From assembly GCA_900088475.1 (NCBI GenBank), contig FLMG01002522.1, positions 1 to 64,000 of the forward strand: a stretch of 64,000 bases of DNA, in the 5' to 3' direction. This document shows, one piece after another, positions 30,295 to 64,000 of the stretch (within the stretch, counting starts at the first letter, position 1; each line of letters starts with the position of its first letter). This DNA comes from Hyphochytrium catenoides (lineage: Eukaryota > Protista > Hyphochytriomycota). The notes below the pieces were generated by a model that was not told the origin of the DNA, did no database searches, and worked only from the letters and a program-made list of their open reading frames with translations. Both the position numbers and the translations under genes were made by a program.

Positions 30295-30347
30295 AGAGAC
30301 TAAGGGGAGAGAGGAGAGGGGGCGAGAGAGAGAGACTGAGTGAGACT

Positions 30348-30389
<42 letters not shown>

Positions 30390-30404
30390 CAGAGAGAGAG
30401 AGAG
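30295..30404. repeat. (GA)n microsatellite
   Basis: Read directly from the sequence. Confidence 0.9.
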
Positions 30405-31328
30405 ATGTTGATAATGACGGAGGCAGTGCGCTTCAAGACACCAGAACCGGTTCACTTACTAAAACCGTCCTGACTTGCCAAGGAAGAAAAGAGAGAGGAG
30501 GAGGAGGCATAAGAAAAGGAGGCGCACAGTGGAAGCACAAAAAGAATGTGGAACCTTTATGCCACCTTCCTCCACCCTCCACCTCCAAGATCATGGATAA
30601 CCCTCCCCATGAATTGCGACATATTGGATTTTCAGCCACCCTTATTCTGCATAATGTGCTGATGCATGATGCACTTGTTGTTTGGAGCAAGCCAGACAAC
30701 GGCTCGTTGTGAAGAGCTTACTCTGCGTTTGCCAGTCAATCCTTAGAGTCATTCGGCGTGTGTGAGTGACAGAGGCTTGTGTGTGTTTTGGTACTAGGTT
30801 AGGTGTATGTACTCTCTCATTATTATAAAACTTGGTAATAACTGTAGATCCCAGAGTTTTATGTTCTATGTAACGAATAAGGCCTTATCTGATTCGCAAT
30901 CTAGCTACTGTATACTGTACAGAAGCGGATTCAGTCTTCCGTGATAGTGATCATAGTGCGGTTGAAAGTGATAATCAAGTCTCGTTGGCGCCAACTACTT
31001 CCTTTCAGAAATTGCGAAAAAGCACTTCATCATCGCCTTTTATGATTGTGGCTCTGGCATCAGAACTCGGATGGGCATCATTGGTGACATCTGGATAGGG
31101 AAACATTGATGCTCAAAGTAGCTTTCTCTACAATCTGCAGACAAACATTTTTCTCAGAGGCTCCATCTCCTGCTGTGGTTGTCACTGCCTTTGCTGGGGC
31201 TCTCCGATAGTGCGATTACGGCAGCGAAGCTTTGTTTCCCTGGCGCCTGATTTAGGTCTCTAAATGAAATCAGCAGTTCTCAGTCGTTGGTAAATCTCAC
31301 CCCTTTAAAGGCTCTATTCATTATCGGC

Positions 31329-53600: not shown

Positions 53601-54232
53601 CTCTAGATTGTAACCCAACTGCTGCAGAGCCTGCGGCAGAAAGACGCACAAGTGAGCCAACAGGACTGCGCATCCCCCCTAACTTGTGCAACTTACCTTC
53701 TTGAAGTTGTGCTCAAGGTCAAGATTGACAAGAGCATTTTGGAAGGTGCGACCCATCAAAAACTCCAGAGAGAGGTAGGACACACGCTTGGTATCTTGCT
53801 CGGCAAAGTATGCCTGGGTGTCGTTCCAGCTCTCAATAAGACGATCTCTGACAGCAAAAGCTGAGGCCATGTAGGCATGCATATTGGTAAAGTTGAAGCG
53901 AGAGGCTGCCAATGTGTACTCAACGTGATCAACAATGCTCTTTTGGATGGACTTGACATCGCTGCCAAGGTAAGAGCTCATCAGAGACCAGAGGAGTTCA
54001 TGCTTATCCTTCTCCTTATCATCTTGGATTTCTCCAAGGCGAAATTCCATAGAAGGAGGTCGTTGAAGAGATCCTAAGAAGAGGGAAAAGGACAGCGGTT
54101 CCACGTGAGCAATATCGGATTTCTTTGTGCGACGCGAAGACAATCTTCGCCCATCGCCATCTCACCTGGCTGAAATTCCCGCCATGAGTTGGTTCTGCCC
54201 AGACGCGGGCTGTTGCTGACTCTGGCCGCCAT
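50665..54232 (-). CDS. Alpha-1,4-glucan (glycogen/starch) phosphorylase, family GT35
   Basis: [82 protein letters not shown], the PLP-lysine motif [10 protein letters not shown], and [11 protein letters not shown]. Start MAARVS at 54232. Confidence 0.96.
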
Positions 54233-55511
54233 GTCTCAATGAACCTAGAGGTGATGAGGTTAATGATCTTGACCTTAATTTCCACAGGCATGAAAGTACG
54301 CTGTACCCCACAGTTTTGAGCTTACCACTATTTTACTCTTGGATGCGGCAACCTCCTTTCTGAGTTTTCCCGAACCTCTTAAAGTACTCACAATTGTGAG
54401 AAGATCAGACTGTGAGCTGAGAACACACCCTCTGTTGCCAAGACAAAGCTCCCCTAGTAGATCTCCGTAGACTGCCAGTTAGTCTCTGTCTGAACAGTCT
54501 CGCAGCTCCCTTTCTTGTCTGCAGCCGCGCGGTGCTTGCGCCCATAGAAAGATCCTTCCTCACTTTACTTATGGGCAAGCGCTAAGACGCTTTCTGCGGT
54601 CATAGTAATGCTGTATCTTTGGCTCAAGCTAAGGTTTTAACCTAAATGTAGGCCATAGTAGTACGACCAGGGGTTTCGCACTCAGATCTTTGGTGTTAGG
54701 TTCAGAAACGTGTGGGTTTGATAAGCCTAGGATAGTATTTGTGAGAGGTAGACTCAGCATCAATCCGGCTTTTGACACATCGAATCCCGAAAAAGTGTCA
54801 TAATGGATGTCACGACTCCCAAAATCGGTCCACGTGGGTGGGAGATGTAGTAAGGTAGGACTGTGAAGCATATTACTATGGCATGTAGGGTGTCACCATG
54901 GGATGGGTGGGAATACGGATAAGACCAATTTTACAGCAAGAGAATCCCCACATTGGGACCACTTTGACCATCATAATAAGTATTGAAGATTACGAATTCA
55001 ATGAGGTTCTATGATAAAAGGAAGCTGAAGTATGAAATTGTACTTTTGTGAATTGGGAGTTTGAGACTGTCCTAGAGGCCGAACCTGGTCCCCTGAAGAG
55101 GTTCGCTCTCAATCTTTGGTGCCCAAAATATCACCGGGAAAGGACGAGTCAGATCTTCGTCGCAGATGCGCCAAAACCTTCAGATTCTCCCACTTCCATG
55201 TGAAGCAAAACGAGACACAACTATGCCGATGAGAGCTTCGCCGCCAGTAGAACCCCATACTAGTACCTTCTGAGCGATAAGCGCCATCGGCAGAGATGGT
55301 CGGTCCGTTGCCCGAGATCACTCAGTTAGATCACATAAACACGGCACTGTCGCTATGTCGGCATGAGGGAATGCAGGGTGAAGTTATTGCGGATCCTCAC
55401 CAGGCTTCTAAAGGGTGATCTGGTGATCGATGCACGTATCACGGTTGATGTTGATGTGGACTGGAATAGTCATTTTACTTAGAGGGGAAGTCTCAAAGGA
55501 AAGGGCTTAAT

Positions 55512-58075
55512 ATGAGCTCTACAACCCGTTCTGAGCCAGATTCTTTTCTATCATCTGAAGTCTACAATAGACTTTGTGGCTCTCCCCTCGAGCATCATGG
55601 GCTTATTGGCGGCAGCAGGCTTAATCGTAAGGAGCGTGATGAAGTAACAGTCGTGGCTAGTAAGGATCATTGTACTCAGCCTCAAATAGACTATAGCAGA
55701 ATCTACGCACTGTCTTCTTCTGCGCCTGATACAGTTCTTCATGAAATAAGGAAAGTAGCCTTTACTCTTAATGAAGAGTTGATAGCTGTTCTTACTTCTA
55801 CTCGAGGGTGGAGTGACTCCATCCAGACTTTTCTTGCGGAGCATGGACAGACTATTGCGCTAATTCCTAACGGTCATATTATCAAGGACGTGCTCCAACT
55901 CATCCTGCTTGCCAACACCCAACCAGCCGAAAACAGACCAGAGCCATCATGGAAAGGTCTAGCGATGCAAGACGAGGAAGTGGTGGACCACTTCTCAGGC
56001 TTCCCAGAGCATGCTTCATATCTAGCTGTTCTTGTCACGACCAGTCTTGTGGAGCGAGTCCTTTTTGAGCTCTGCTGTGCGCTTTCCGGCAGCAACGGGG
56101 TCATGATTCTTCGAGACATAATTCAGCATCCTGACGTGTGTAAGGTGCTAGGAGAACCAATGACCTTCTGTCTAAGGTGATAACGGAGCTCCCGCAATGT
56201 CGCCTTTAGCGAGTCCACCACATACTTTAAAGGCTGATTTGTCGCTCTTTTAGGGCCCTCTTTCTTCCAAAGGATGGGATCAACCTTCGGAATCTTGTCT
56301 GGCATGGCTTCGCCAGCCCTCACGAGGTACATCCCAGCTGGGCATCCTTGCTCGTCATACTGCTGCTTGATGTGGGACATTCCATTTTGAACCGGGCACC
56401 CTACGGAGCCTTCGCGCCTCAACGGCTTACTTCATCTCTCGACATGATAGATTTAGAGCCGGTACAACAGGAAAAGCTGGACGCTATATTTTTCGACCAG
56501 GTCTGCGCTCCTGCCGAGAAGTCAGGCTCTCTACTAGCCACGAAAACCATTGAGCTTGTAGAGCGGTCGTGCTTTTTCCTTCCAGTACGTCAGCCAATGG
56601 TGCTTTGGGCTCTTAAACAGCTTGCAGTAGGGCGCTGGCATTGGTTTGGTATCGTCGCACTTCCCTTCTTAGAACATGAAGTAAGACGCCTTTTCGCTTC
56701 CATCAATGACTCTCCCGAGTTTCTTCAGGCTCATACAGACAAGTACTATTCTACCCTTGACGGCTTCGGACAGAAGTCCAGGCACCAGGTCCTTCTTGAC
56801 TTCTGGATTTTCCAAGAGGACGACTCCAAAGACATGAAGGACGCGAGCTCGCCAAGAGGTGGTCAACGTTCCTCAATCGATGAGGATATAGAAGTGAAGG
56901 AGCCGACCAGACGCGAAAATGCCCTCCTTAACGCCCTGCCTCGTGGTGTGCTAGACTGTCTCCTAGACCTCTTCATGCTTCCTGATAGCCCTGCACCAAG
57001 AGGTAAACTCGCTCACGGAGAGCTGCTTTTGGAGCCTCTCTTTGCTGTAACGACAACAACGGAAGTCCCCACTGTGGAGAAACAAGGACGGACGGTTTGG
57101 TTGCTGCTGGCTTTGACCATGCTTGCACTATGTGTCGAGAGAGTATCTGCCGAAAAAGTCAACCTAGAGAACTCGTTGACAAAAGAAGTCCAGCAATACT
57201 TTCAGTCCTACTCGTCATATCTGCATCCGTCTAAACAGCTAGCTCGGCGCGTGGAACGATTTCTGGTCGCCCGAGAGAAGCTGATGACAGGGTTCAAGTC
57301 TATCAATTGGACTGCTCTCAAAGATGGGACTGATGGCACGATCCTGAAGGTCCAGATATCCCTCGATGGACAAATGGCGCACTTTGATCTAAGCACTTCT
57401 TCAGTGCAACGGGTCATAGAGAGTGTCCAAGCTCTAGCTCGTCGAGTATCGCAGCTTCGAGAGTTTTACAGACTGGATAAAGTTCACAGCCAACACCAAG
57501 CTGAGAAGATGCGCTGTTATGGTCTCATTGTTCAACTCACGCAAGACCCGAGCACTACGAATGACCGTGAACGTCGGCTCTTTTCTGAGATGAGAAGTCG
57601 AATATCAGGGTTAGAGGCCTTTCCCGGATTGCGAGGTCTACGGTTTTGCCTAGAGGAATGTCGGGATCTCGCGGAAGGGCTTCGTCTAGAGTTGGAGCAG
57701 GGTGTCCGCCTTGTATTAGGACGGAGAGCTCGTTCTCAACGCCGGAAGGTCGTTGTGAAATTGCTCGTATCTGTTGACGCACTGCTTGAGCTGCTGGAGC
57801 TGTTCAGTATGATCATTGCGTATCAGATACTAGAGAAGCGGTCAGGGTCGTCAAAAATCATTCTCTTGCTCAACAATGTTTTGGCAAGAGTGAATAATCG
57901 CTTCTTTCCAGCGCCGCGAGCACCTAAAGCACCGGTTGATCCCAAGGGTGCCACCATAGTTCATTCCCGACCGGGTGCCGGGTTGGCACCTACTTTGAAC
58001 ATTGTTGAGCCTTCTAGGTCATCACTCGCTGTGGAGCAGCTCCTCGCTGAACTCACTGAAGCGCTGACGGGCTAA
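55512..58075 (+). CDS. ERMARD: ER membrane-associated RNA degradation protein (DUF4209, HEPN-like); one intron at 56177-56253
   Basis: ILRDIIQHPDVCKVLG..CLR|ALFLPKDGINLRNLVWHGFASPHEV; LEHEVRRLFASIN...YYSTLD; PRGKLAHGE. Confidence 0.85.
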
Positions 58076-58151
58076 TCCCGACGGTGCCATAGTAGACTAA
58101 CGACAATAAGGCGGGGAGACGCTTATCTTCATCTGCCATTTGATCCCTCAT

Positions 58152-58972
58152 TTACTGTCTCAAACCCTTATTTGTCTGGGTTCCAGAGTACATATCCCTG
58201 AGGTATTCCCAAGAGGGGTTCCCAGGTGTCCGACCTGCAACCAGGATACTAGAGTCATTAGTGAAGGCTTTAACTCCCATGGCCCGTGTACGGTCTACGG
58301 TTTGAGGAGTACTTTCTACGTTACGTCATCTGTCAAGGAAAGGCTCCCTCCTCTCAAGGTCTGCTGCCAGGAGACTACGGAGAAGAGTTTCAGACCGAAA
58401 TCGCCTTCCAGATTCCTTGCTCTCAAAGTCCGGGAAAAGCGCTGGCTTGGCAAGCAGCTCTTTATACCTTTCAAGTGTCCCAGGGTTAAAGCATTCCTGA
58501 AGGTGCGCCTGATAACCCTCTCCTTCAAAAAGGGCGTTTTGAGCACGTTGTACGGTTGACATGTGCATGAGGACTGACCTTAGGTAGCTGTCAAAGTAAC
58601 CTGCTTTCAAGCGACTGATGGCGACTCTGGCGCCCGCAGCGCACTGCTCGCGCAAGAAGAAGACCACATCCGTTGAGACAGCTGCTCTATGTCTCAGGAC
58701 GGCGGGAACGTCATCAGCGATGTTCGGGGCCATGTTGTCAAGCACGTCGGGAGAGTAGCCATTAAAGCTTTTTTTGCAAGCCCTACACCTATACCGCTTG
58801 CAGATAACGTGAAAAGTACTCCTCAAACCGTAGACCGTACGCGGGCCATGGGGGTTAAGCCTTCACTAATGACTATATCCTGGTTGCCGGTCGGACCCCT
58901 GGGAACCTCTCTTGGGAATACCTCAGGGATATGTACTCTGGAACCCAGACAAATAAGGGTTTGAGACAGTAA
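58152..58972. repeat. Long inverted repeat: arm 1 at 58152-58323, arm 2 at 58805-58972, spacer about 480 bp
   Basis: In a hand alignment the outer 64 bp are identical; overall there are about 7 substitutions and about 4 gapped nt. Confidence 0.95.
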
Positions 58973-59800
58973 GGGATGAATCCAGTAAGTGTTCTTGTGC
59001 GGCCAAGATCCTTGGAGCTTGATTCCTTCCCTCCTCTGGCCCCCTCCTCCTCCAGGGCCTAACCAGATACTGTCCTTAATGATCTGGATCTGACTGTCCA
59101 TCCACTCCCTCTGCAAATGTGGTATAGGTCTCTCCTCATCAGGATCATCAGATAATCTGGCCTTAGGGTCAATGGCCTCCTCGGCTATTCTTCCCCTTCC
59201 CTCTAGCCGCTCGGGAGATGTAGGAGTAGGGTCAGTGACCATGCGGTCCTAGTGGGAATGGGCACCGGGTTGCTGCTGGTACATAAAAGCAAGAATGGGA
59301 ATGATCTGTCAGGACAGGGTTAGGAAAATACATCAATACGTCCCATCATAGCTCCCATCATACCTATTACCGACAGTCTGTTGGTCAGCAATCGTTGGAG
59401 CAATCTCATTTGTTGCTCTCTGGCGGCTGGTGGTTGCGCCAGAAGCGCTTCCCTGGTTCTCTCTGGCTGCTGCTGTTAAAGACTGAGAGCCCACTGGTAC
59501 ACTGCAAGCATTGCCAAAGACGAGGTAAGGTATGAAACTAGAGCAGAACTTCAAGAAGGCTAGTGAAGCAAGCCTAACAGTGAAGGATTGATCCTTCCTA
59601 TACTTACGTCCTAACATTGTCACTTCTTGCAGATAATGATGCAGCAGAGGCCACATTTGCTCTTTGCTTGTTTCTTTGCAAGACATAAGACGCTCGCTTT
59701 CTCTTTTGAGTATCTGTCTCTTTGGCAAATTCTTCTCTACGGGGACATCTAGCAATGTTGTGCTCTTGGCTTCCGCATTCGCTGCAGGAAAGTTTGACCT
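58326..59800 (-). mobile_element. Decayed, truncated transposon-type gene: CCHC zinc knuckle exon plus DUF6729 (Zisupton/KDZ-associated)-like region
   Basis: CSECGSQEHNIARC at 59786-59745. TYWIHP / YCLKPLFVWVPE / CPTC..GF..GPxTVYGL..F.V..KRYRCRACKKSFNGYSPDVLDNM...VPAVLRHRAAVS, interrupted by frameshifts. Confidence 0.6.
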
Positions 59801-60576
59801 TTCAAAACCGCCATGACGATTAGACAGATGTGTAAGAGCAACCCAGTTCCTGCACCCCCGAACCGTGGTGTAGTCGAAGCAACGATACTATGTAATAGTG
59901 CAAAGGCGTTTGTTGTTGGTGAGTCGTCGTCTTTGTGGCTGGTAATCGTTCGCCGCTTGTTGTTCGTTGCCGAGAGACGTCAACCCAAACAGATTGTGAT
60001 TGAGGGAGAAGAGGAACATAGCAGGAGATCGGTCGACAGTAGTGGGTAAGGCATCAAAAGGAAGAAGCTGCTGTCGGGCAGGTGAGGAGGACAGGTGACC
60101 GCTATTCTTATCGTCACGGCGATTGATGAGGGAGGCTGATGAGCGGCAAGCGGCAAGGGAGCGAAGGAGGAGAAGTCGAGAGAGCAGGAAGAGAGGAGAA
60201 AACAAAGGGATCACAGACGGCGCGCATCTTTCATCTTTTGACACATGAAAAGGTGAATGACTCTGCTCCTTTACCTTACAAATTCAAGTTATATTAAGAT
60301 AGTGAGGCTGCGGAGGTTGTAACTCGTCAGCTCTAGGTTCTAGTGCCTAGCTAGTGAGGCCCATTGCCTTCGCTGACCCAAGGTCAGTGGAGCTGAGGTT
60401 TTTGCCGTCTAGCCCGCTAACGGCTAGCATTTGAACCGATCACCAGGCAAGAATTGGTTGCCATCCACAGAGGTTGCCCGTCTGAAGATACAGCGCAGGT
60501 ACTGGAGGAAGTCTGGATGAAGGAGAGGGATAATTTTATAAAACATAACTTACTTATCACGAATAATCCTGCCCAA

Positions 60577-60592
60577 TCACGTCATGACGTGA
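60577..60592. promoter_or_regulatory. Perfect 16-bp palindrome TCACGTCATGACGTGA (two CRE/G-box-like ACGT cores)
   Basis: The palindrome is seen directly, about 580 bp upstream of the acyl-CoA oxidase ATG. A regulatory role is inferred. Confidence 0.3.
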
Positions 60593-61171
60593 AAGGACGT
60601 GACCTCTCCTAACCGCCCTGCATATCTTTAGCTACCATCTATCAGCCTCAACATTAAGCTCGCCCACCCATCTCAACAGGAGACAGCCTGACGTGGAGGG
60701 CAAGGACATCTGTAGTAATTCTAATTAAGAGGCTGCCATGATGGCCTTTAGAGAGATTAGCGACGTTAGTAGTGCTCGCGATTCGCCGTTAGCGGCTGCA
60801 TGGATGCGAAGCCCTATCTTTGCCCCAACATCACATCGAACAGCAAACCGGGAGCGGAAGGGCAAGTTGAAGCCGCGAAGGAGCTTACGAGGAGAGCTGA
60901 GCGCACGGCAGCGGAGGCTGAAGGGCAGGAGAGACGAGACTCCGAAGAGACAGTGCGAGAGACAGATATCAGATAGCATCGAGAGGAGTACGGCTGGCCC
61001 TCAACCTTTGGGGACTGACACGCGCTCACTCTACCATCTTCCACATCCGGCCCACAAGCACCACCATCGACCTACTACATATCCCTTCAGGCTAAGAGTG
61101 CACGTCCGCTGCAGTTCCCCTCAAAGTGCTAACCAAGCCTACGTGTCACCAGAGAGCTTTTGACTAAAAAG

Positions 61172-64000
61172 ATGTTGGCGGTCAACCACCATCCTACAGC
61201 CCAGGACCCCTCCCAAGAGGGTCCAATCTTGCTCCAGAAGGAGAGAAGCAAGGCCTCCTTCTGCACACGAGCGATGACTGAGGCACTATACGGTGAGCTC
61301 GGTTATAAACCATCAGCTTCCAAATGACCCAAAATTGACCTCCGAACCATTCGATCTGCAGGTGGCGCCGACAACGCCAAACGACGGGAGTACCTAGCGA
61401 AGGAATTCTTGGATGACCCCGTTTTTTCTGCCATAGACCGGTAGGGAAAAAAAATTGCTATCGGAGGGCCAATGGTCTCAGCTGTCTGATCATAAACACG
61501 CAGTCCCTTCATGAACCATACTCAGCAGTACAATCGCGCTCTGGAAAAAGCTCACCATTTCATCAAAAAGACCAAGAAGTTAGGCGTGGAGCCTTGTTCC
61601 CAGGAATGGGGGTGAGTGTTCCCCAAGAACCTAGCCAAGCGCTAATGGATGGAGCTTGAACGTCAGTCTCATGCTCGCTTGTTCCCTTAGCTTCTGCTAT
61701 ATGCTTCTGGGTGAAGTGCTGCCCATTGATGTGCACAACAGCATGTTTTTGCCTACGCTGCTGAACCAAACGACCCCCGAGCAGAAGGAGAGATGGTATT
61801 ACCCAGCAAAGGACTTCAAGATTCTGGGTGCTTACGCACAGGTTTGCTACCTAACTCTGAGCATTCTTCTCACTCGTTGAGCTGGTTTACACCTACCCGC
61901 ATCTCTATGTAAGCTGTCCTTGGCTAACGTCCGTTCGATCTGTAGACCGAGCTGGGCCACGGTTCGAACCTTAGAAAGTTGGAGACAACGGCGACCTACG
62001 ACAAGGAGACTCAGGAGTTTATTATCAATTCTCCGACATTGACCAGTGAGACTTATTTCTCCTTGGCTTTCTCATTGCACTCGTCTCTCTATTCTAAGTC
62101 AGCTGGATTATGGATATGCTGCGTCTGTCATCCTCCCGCACCTGACACTTTCCGCCTTTTTAGGTACAAAATGGTGGCCAGGAGGACTTGGTCGCACGGC
62201 TACTCATACCATTTTACTGGCTAACCTAATCCTAGACGGCAAGGACTATGGCATGCACACCTTTATTGTGCAGATAAGGAGCCTTAAGGATCACACTCCC
62301 CTCCCAGGCATCACTCTGGGCGATATTGGGCCCAAAGTCGGATTCCAAGGCATTGATAATGGTATGTCACATGCTGAATCTCTGCCTCTTCTGCGTGCTC
62401 CTTTCCTCTATAGCTTGTTCTCCTCGTTCTCTTGTGGCTCGTCTCTACATTGACCTCAGTATGATGAGTGTTACGACGGCCTTCACTTGGTCAGTTTCCC
62501 GCGACTTTGTCCACTCTGCCAAATATTTAAAAGTGGAATGCTTCAATGGAGCTGAGCAAGCATGTGAATTGCTGACAACGTCTTTCTCCCTAGGCTATGC
62601 TTCTTTCAACCATGTGCGCATCCCCCGTGACCAGATGTTGATGCGTTATGCCCAAGTCACTCCAGAAGGGAAGTACATCCAGCCCCCGGGACATCAGATG
62701 CAGTACATCACCATGCTCCACGTCAGGGCTAACATCATACAGATGTGCGGCTTCATTCTGGGCATGGGCACCACGATCTCTACAAGGTGCTGACAGTTGC
62801 TCTGCACGTTTTGAAGAGTTTTTAGCCCTTCGTCGAGCTATCAGCATTGCTTCTTTCTGTCCTCTGATCCGTTCTGACCATTAGTTTAATGCCCATACGC
62901 TGCTTCGTGTTGGTCCACACGTGTCATAGTCCACCTAGAGCTATTGCCCTTTATACTTTAGCTTGACATCTCATCTAATAGCCCACTCCCGTCCCACCTC
63001 TTTAGGTATAGCGCCGTCAGAAAGCAAGGCAATGGCGCGGACGGGAAGGAGGTTCAGGTAATGATACCGAGCAGGATGTATATCCCACATGAAAGACATC
63101 TGACCCTCTCCTACCTTGTAGGTCTTGGACTATCAGCAGCAGCAAGCAAATCTCTTGCCTCTCATTGCAATATGTAAGCCTTGGTGACCAACCTCCAGCA
63201 CATTGTCACTAACTTACGACTCTGGCATCGATTGCATCATCCTCTTCAGCCTATGCCGGACATTTTGTGGGGCAGCGGATCTTGGAGCAGTACGACGAGA
63301 CTATGGCAGCTATAAATCGGGGGGATCTCTCGCTGTTACCTGAGATGCATGCAACTAGGTAGCATGTCACATCTATCTACCTTTACTCAAATGTTCCCGT
63401 CCTAGTCTATTAGTCATTTTAATATTTGTCCTCCATACACTCTGTTTGCAGATCGCTATCTTTCTCTTAGATGTCCCGCTTCTAATCCGTGACGGCTTGC
63501 GATGCCTACGACCCTTATCTCACTAGTTTCCTTATGGAATCCTTTTAGCTCTATTATGAAGGGTATGTTCAGCCATCTGGCGTCAGATGGAATGGAGCAC
63601 TGTCGCAGACTCTGCGGCGGTCACGGATATTCTTACGCCTCCGGTATCCCTGACAAGTCAGGGAATCTGGTAGCCGCTTGCACCTATGAGGGCACAATTG
63701 ATATCCTGGCCCAACAGACAGCGAGGTAACGATATGCGCAAGAGCACTCTTATACAGGGAACTATACCTAGTTGAACCATCAGACGCGTCTTCGTCGCAT
63801 AGTTGTGCGATTGCTTTCAAACAGCACCACATTGAACCGAGATGCCTCTCTTGCGTCACAGGTATCTCATCAAGTCAGTGAACCTTGTGGCGAAGGGAAA
63901 GAAGCTGACCGGAGCGGCAAAGTATTTAGAGAGAACACCTTCGCTATTGGGGTACAGATCATCAGCGAAGACGGTGGAGGAGCTGAAAACAGTTGATGTC
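61172..64000 (+). CDS. ACOX1: Peroxisomal acyl-CoA oxidase, 5' part (runs off the window)
   Basis: [18 protein letters not shown]|[60 protein letters not shown]. Confidence 0.93.

Follow-up and report, generated by a model that had tools for sequence, protein, structure and literature searches.

An inverted duplication in a fragment of a DUF6729-type element gene beside an ERMARD-like gene of Hyphochytrium catenoides, probably a neutral relic

In the 64,000-nt stretch of Hyphochytrium catenoides DNA analysed here (positions 1 to 64,000 of contig FLMG01002522.1, called the window below), part of a gene resembling that of a mobile element lies twice, in opposite orientations, directly behind the stop codon of a host gene. 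The question raised by this arrangement is whether it works, or has worked, as a hairpin-RNA locus that silences a transposon family in the manner of maize Mu killer. A first-pass annotation had proposed that it could, and the architecture behind that proposal stands, as part of an element gene has been duplicated in inverted orientation beside a host gene; the silencing role fares less well, as no family for it to silence was found in the 61-Mb assembly.

The remnant was read chiefly against two relatives. One is P0039, an intact 768-aa protein that is very close to the window copy, and the other is a 1032-aa ORF on contig C236, the best-preserved family locus in the genome, which carries DUF6729 together with a DNA_pol_A_exo1 3'-5' exonuclease domain. 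The parts of the locus, in order of position, are as follows.

55512-58075, plus strand: DUF4209/ERMARD-like host gene, coding in two or more blocks (55512-56180 and 56348-58075) with its stop codon at 58073-58075, placed by homologues.
58076-58146, plus strand: flank from the host stop to arm 1, with AATAA at 58105-58109 (motif scan).
58147-58323, plus strand: arm 1, an inverted copy of element residues ~102-162 (the CxxC ... VYGL segment), placed by tblastn with P0039 and by alignment of the arms.
58324-58804, minus strand: spacer (loop), holding the DUF6729 core, placed by the Pfam match and alignment to P0039 and the C236 protein.
58805-58972, minus strand: arm 2, which holds this segment at its original place in the gene and has decayed further than arm 1.
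58973-59242, minus strand: acidic N-terminus of the element protein, which differs very little from P0039 residues 1-88.
59616-59813, minus strand: probable first coding block, CCHC zinc-knuckle-like, a weak assignment made by tblastn.

The inverted copies described at 58152-58323 and 58805-58972 were recovered by MAFFT alignment, in which they differ by 8 substitutions and 2 indels (one of 3 nt and one of 1 nt), and their outer 64 bp (58152-58215) are identical, as the first-pass annotation had claimed, with further perfect duplex runs of 18 and 28 bp inward of this block. The repeat search returned the structure as two arm pairs, 58142-58248/58876-58982 (107 nt, 93%) and 58270-58323/58805-58858 (54 nt, 93%). 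The stem of ~172 bp at 93% identity is of the long, near-perfect intramolecular kind that inverted-repeat (IR) siRNA loci have, and 481 bp are enclosed between the arms. When 58076-59000 was folded as RNA the predicted energy was -493 kcal/mol, compared with -297 +/- 6 for shuffled sequences (z = -30.7), and a duplex of the arms only was predicted at about -319 kcal/mol for the plus strand and -311 for the minus strand. The fold-back is the sole long inverted repeat in the window outside low-complexity sequence; CT/GA low-complexity tracts at 5486-5660 and 30314-30411 gave many spurious inverted-repeat pairs. Neither known RNA families nor tRNAs were found in 57500-62000 and 55000-64000. All 10 differences between the arms fall within the inner ~108 bp, which by our own calculation has a probability of ~1% if differences are scattered evenly, and the clean outer 64 bp could reflect a constraint of some kind on the stem, or else gene conversion.

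The sequence enclosed by the arms, and the sequence beyond arm 2, were assigned by protein homology. An ORF at 58326-58826 (minus strand) matched Pfam DUF6729 with E = 2.4e-9 (37.5 bits, cut-off 27), and in the genome-wide search the window copy scored 38.1 bits. The spacer reading frame is open for 166 codons and aligned to residues 159-327 of P0039, with 147 of 163 aligned residues identical plus a 4-aa deletion, and to residues 200-457 of the C236 protein at 38% identity. It terminates with '...EPFLDR' and a stop, where homology to the intact relatives ceases and P0039 goes on 'RMQM...'. With the C236 protein as tblastn query, residues 139-447 matched window 59188-58326 on the minus strand and residues 229-284 matched again, inverted, at 58156-58322 on the plus strand. 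The region 58973-59242 aligned to the P0039 N-terminus with 87 of 88 residues identical and one extra Gly. Further out, the CCHC block was matched by C236 residues 10-71 (59616-59789; E = 0.004 in a 1.3-kb search) and by residues 11-54 of another relative, P0041 (59667-59786; E = 0.001), and an ATG at 59813 is out of frame with it.

Read along the minus strand, the remnant therefore has the order N (P0039 residues 1-88), A (~105-162, arm 2), B (163-327, the spacer) and A' (arm 1, inverted), and homology to P0039 and the C236 protein stops at 58326-58329, directly against arm 1. What survives corresponds to P0039 residues 1-327 of 768, the front ~43%, between ~59813 and 58326. The exonuclease half is absent, as homology ends at P0039 residue 327 and no exonuclease-domain match was obtained anywhere in the window. 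Judged on these alignments, the locus is a frameshifted N-terminal fragment of a gene of the DUF6729 plus 3'-5' exonuclease repeat family. Family homology was not detected in 59800-61200, and the other C236 ORFs (for a Ulp1 protease and two more proteins) had no match in the window. The identity to P0039 is uneven, at 87/88 over 58973-59242 and 147/163 over 58329-58817 (Fisher's exact p = 0.008), which might be due to recombination, to gene conversion or to chimerism of the Logan contig.

The first-pass annotation had taken the spacer for transposase sequence. That it is coding sequence of a repeat family (DUF6729) is upheld; for the family as a transposase there are hints, in the form of multiple copies, broken copies, short repeat-like contigs and the Ulp1 ORF adjoining on C236, and a KDZ-associated CxC4 cysteine cluster gave a sub-threshold match (E = 0.12). 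By sequence, this suggests that the family is mobile-element-like. At least seven DUF6729 loci were found in the genome by Pfam search. Four further relatives (P0039-P0042) all combine DUF6729 with the exonuclease and all come from Logan assemblies, and clusters of the ESM Atlas with the PF20499 and PF01612 pair were from Basidiomycota and Mucoromycota. A literature search found no paper mentioning DUF6729. On contig C236 (1-7503), ORFs of 155 aa and 412 aa and an Ulp1 (Peptidase_C48) ORF lie downstream of the 1032-aa ORF on the same strand, and this contig may represent a multi-gene mobile element of undescribed kind. Two other loci, G000:C1245:63553-64458 and G000:C176:16295-16984, are DNA copies (84% and 72%) of the C236 gene that cover its N-terminal ~300 codons alone, so N-terminal fragments of the family are found repeatedly in the genome; an inverted duplication is absent from both, and no comparable inverted repeat was found at eight other family loci.

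Comparison of each arm with P0039 separated shared lesions from private ones. For arm 1 the match was 88% over residues 121-162 and 94% over residues 104-119, falling to 65% over residues 104-129, where it runs into the wrong frame, which places a frameshift near 58194-58200; its family homology extends outward to about 58136-58147. The frameshift is common to both arms, where 'IYPEV' of P0039 has become 'ISLR...', and so either the copy was broken before the duplication or the outer part was homogenised later. Other changes are private to one arm. Arm 1 has Pro to Ser and Arg to Cys, and arm 2 has two Cys to Gly in the CxxC motif, Gly to Glu and Tyr to His, together with a 3-nt deletion and a frame-breaking 1-nt deletion. 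Exactly at the outer edge of arm 2, ~13-16 codons (from P0039 residue 89) have been deleted, and arm 1 retains the last few codons of that stretch ('FDP.IY', 58136-58155). As each arm carries inactivating changes of its own, the arms have decayed independently since the duplication, which must be old and real, and the arm-specific loss of conserved Cys, Pro and Arg residues or of frame rules out protein-level constraint on the arms.

The neighbouring ORF that ends at 58075, named ERMARD in the first-pass annotation, proved to be a real gene. The 575-aa ORF has 38 homologues, mostly oomycete and annotated as DUF4209; 36 of the 38 carry PF13910 (DUF4209) and one is annotated 'Endoplasmic reticulum membrane-associated RNA degradation protein'. 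BLASTP of the ORF to a Phytophthora homologue (P0012) gave E = 2e-25 across the DUF4209 region, and in an hmmscan of the ORF itself no family reached E <= 0.1. In this pair of proteins the C-terminal tails left unaligned are of the same length (79 and 81 aa), so the stop at 58075 is probably native. From this stop to 58152 there are 76 nt, as had been stated, or 60-76 nt when the longer family homology of arm 1 is allowed for, and the only poly(A)-signal-like motif in between is the AATAA, a candidate signal. The host gene (plus strand) and the element remnant (minus strand) converge tail-to-tail. Further away in the window, ORFs at 53679-54143 (minus strand) and 61173-63900 (plus strand) resemble, by eye, exons of glycogen phosphorylase and acyl-CoA oxidase.

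A silencing locus that acts in trans needs something to silence, and here the proposal that double-stranded RNA would be directed against the DUF6729-type family was not supported. The element is single-copy at the DNA level, without any near-identical family locus in the assembly, and DNA searches of the whole assembly (61 Mb) matched the locus itself and an unrelated 70-bp repeat. The latter, at window 60375-60444, matches the extreme end of a contig (G000:C2427:16193-16261, 94%), is neither a tRNA nor a member of an Rfam family, and is probably the end of some other repeat. Over the shared region the other family loci have 29-45% protein identity to the fragment. Six of them were compared with the hairpin region, where the longest common exact word was 10-14 nt and the best alignment 69% over 159 bp, and with no exact word longer than 14 nt, siRNAs of 21-25 nt would be without a target at these six loci. 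A look for full-length copies elsewhere in the genome gave no intact P0039-like copy in the assembly, the best other loci having 45%, 41% and 61% identity to P0039 (the last over the C-terminal part only). The assembly, in 4759 contigs, is fragmented and may have collapsed or lost repeat copies, and as the near-identical intact P0039 occurs in another public assembly, targets may exist in related strains or species.

The machinery for making small RNAs was also looked for, and both a full Argonaute and a Dicer-like gene are present. The Argonaute is an 834-aa ORF on contig C2026 with ArgoN, L1, PAZ, L2, Mid and Piwi domains, and the Dicer-like gene, on C4108, has a Dicer_dimer domain and two RNase III domains; a second locus, on C3463, gave three RNase III matches. 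A search for RdRP gave no match here, nor in the control genomes either. Per megabase, no other source in Phytophthora yields as many small RNAs as inverted repeats do (PMC3804510), and with this precedent and the Argonaute and Dicer-like genes at hand, an RNA that spanned the two arms would probably be diced.

Taken together, these data make it likely that the locus is what a dead, rearranged element has left behind, a neutral relic with no present role in silencing in trans, its neutrality being judged from the decay of the arms and the lack of targets. The most economical origin of the A-B-A' order would be a single event at the DNA level, in which the element suffered a break and its broken 3' end then folded back or switched template, copying segment A in reverse. 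An inverted internal segment of ~175 bp (residues ~102-162) would thereby have been joined at the truncation point, giving A-B-A', and neutral drift would then have brought the arms to about 5% substitutions. An inverted microhomology of 8/9 (TCTG-CAAG), with 5 filler bases, lies at the loop base, the place at which a 3' end priming by fold-back has to anneal; it is equalled by 6.7% of random 20-mer pairs from the region and so is not significant, and as a trace of fold-back it is only suggestive. Host read-through or transcription of the remnant could yield an RNA with a ~170-bp near-perfect stem and a 481-nt loop, which the Dicer-like and Argonaute proteins could process. The small RNAs would match their own locus only, as nothing else in the assembly is similar enough, and this leads back to the reading of the locus as a neutral relic. 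As such, it would serve as an example of how broken mobile elements gain fold-back ends, and it would show that a good-looking hairpin beside a gene is no evidence of silencing unless targets exist.

The alternative raised at the outset, a working or former Mu killer-like silencer whose spanning transcript is diced and whose P0039-type targets were lost or are unassembled, appears unlikely to us. It fits the partial inverted duplication of an element gene adjoining a host gene, and it draws on the perfect duplex runs of 64, 28 and 18 bp, on the complete Argonaute and Dicer-like gene and on the productivity of inverted repeats in Phytophthora (PMC3804510). An intact relative also exists in a Logan assembly (P0039, with 98% identity in residues 1-88 and 90% in the spacer), and the absence of intact copies would be compatible with successful silencing in the past. 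Weighing against it, the assembly holds no target, the arms are ~172 bp of internal coding sequence where those of Mu killer are ~1300 bp and include the element 5' end (PMC3440606), the arms are decaying independently, the AATAA ahead of arm 1 is a possible signal for the host transcript to end, and no independent assembly of the junction was found; the RdRP search without a match points the same way, though the control genomes gave none either. A more specific form of this alternative holds that the locus is a Mu killer analogue now or was one recently, the remnant being transcribed from or into the ERMARD-like gene and its siRNAs having silenced the P0039-type subfamily, hence no intact copy here as against the related organism, and we regard this as distinctly improbable. 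If siRNAs from the hairpin did silence an active element, nature would have provided a Mu killer-like locus outside plants, and accidental inverted duplications would then be able to start transposon silencing in stramenopiles too.

An action in cis, with no transposon family as target, is likewise improbable. Small RNAs from the remnant, or antisense RNA from its minus strand running into the 3' end of the ERMARD-like gene, would here modulate that gene. The genes do converge, arm 1 begins 60-76 nt past the host stop, and at Mu killer the silencing-associated transcripts run from within the element to an end in the gene beside it (PMC3440606), but the argument is one of position purely, and neither arm resembles the host gene in sequence.

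It is more doubtful still that the inverted duplication was produced by a chimeric or palindromic join in the assembly. The fragmentation into 4759 contigs leaves room for such an error, and no independent copy of the junction-spanning ORF was found: a homology search with it gave no match, nor did four window ORFs when looked up as exact sequences. Against this, the arms differ by their 8 substitutions and 2 indels and each has derived states relative to P0039, where the fold-back of a single molecule would yield identical arms, and the inner junction lies outside any repeat, so that a repeat-induced misjoin would not give A-B-A'. With derived changes private to each arm, an assembly palindrome is unlikely. 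Lastly, the idea of a small non-autonomous, MITE-like element of ~830 bp with the arms as its terminal inverted repeats, which in size and shape the unit does resemble (a fold-back or MITE element), is scarcely credible and was rejected, as the arms are internal coding sequence, P0039 homology runs unbroken for 270 bp past arm 2, the unit is single-copy and no target-site duplication is evident.

Set beside the DUF6729 plus exonuclease family to which it belongs, the window copy shares DUF6729 and differs in being without the exonuclease half and in being frameshifted. [quoted passage not shown] 2005, as described in PMC3440606). The two are alike in being a truncated element copy at whose end part of the element's own gene is duplicated in inverted orientation, with a host gene adjoining, from or into which transcription can run, and from both a long hairpin RNA is possible. 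They differ in what was duplicated, since the ~1300 bp of Mu killer take in the 5' end of mudrA along with the terminal inverted repeat, whereas here ~172 bp of internal coding sequence flank a 481-nt loop; the element terminus and the promoter-proximal 5' part were not duplicated, and the CCHC block and the first 88 codons are each present once, beyond the repeat. They differ also in their targets, as Mu killer has active, near-identical MuDR elements to act on, while the assembly studied here holds none and both arms have decayed.

Maize Ac/Ds offers a second comparison. According to a bioRxiv preprint (10.1101/2020.01.07.897926), alternative transposition of Ac/Ds produces inverted duplications that start siRNA silencing, and the likeness is that a rearrangement of element DNA yields an inverted duplication able to feed RNAi; the difference is that an origin by transposition, and element ends, are not demonstrable at the window locus, where a break followed by fold-back or a template switch fits equally well. 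Nearer in lineage are the IR loci of Phytophthora, for example the 714-nt pin-IR2758 (PMC3804510), which are strong sources of ~21-nt siRNAs (PMC3804510). These share with the window locus a long, near-perfect inverted repeat in a stramenopile that has a Dicer-like protein and Argonaute. They were defined by sequenced small RNAs, whereas the window locus is known from DNA alone, and H. catenoides is only distantly related to Phytophthora, homologues of the host gene being 24-42% identical.
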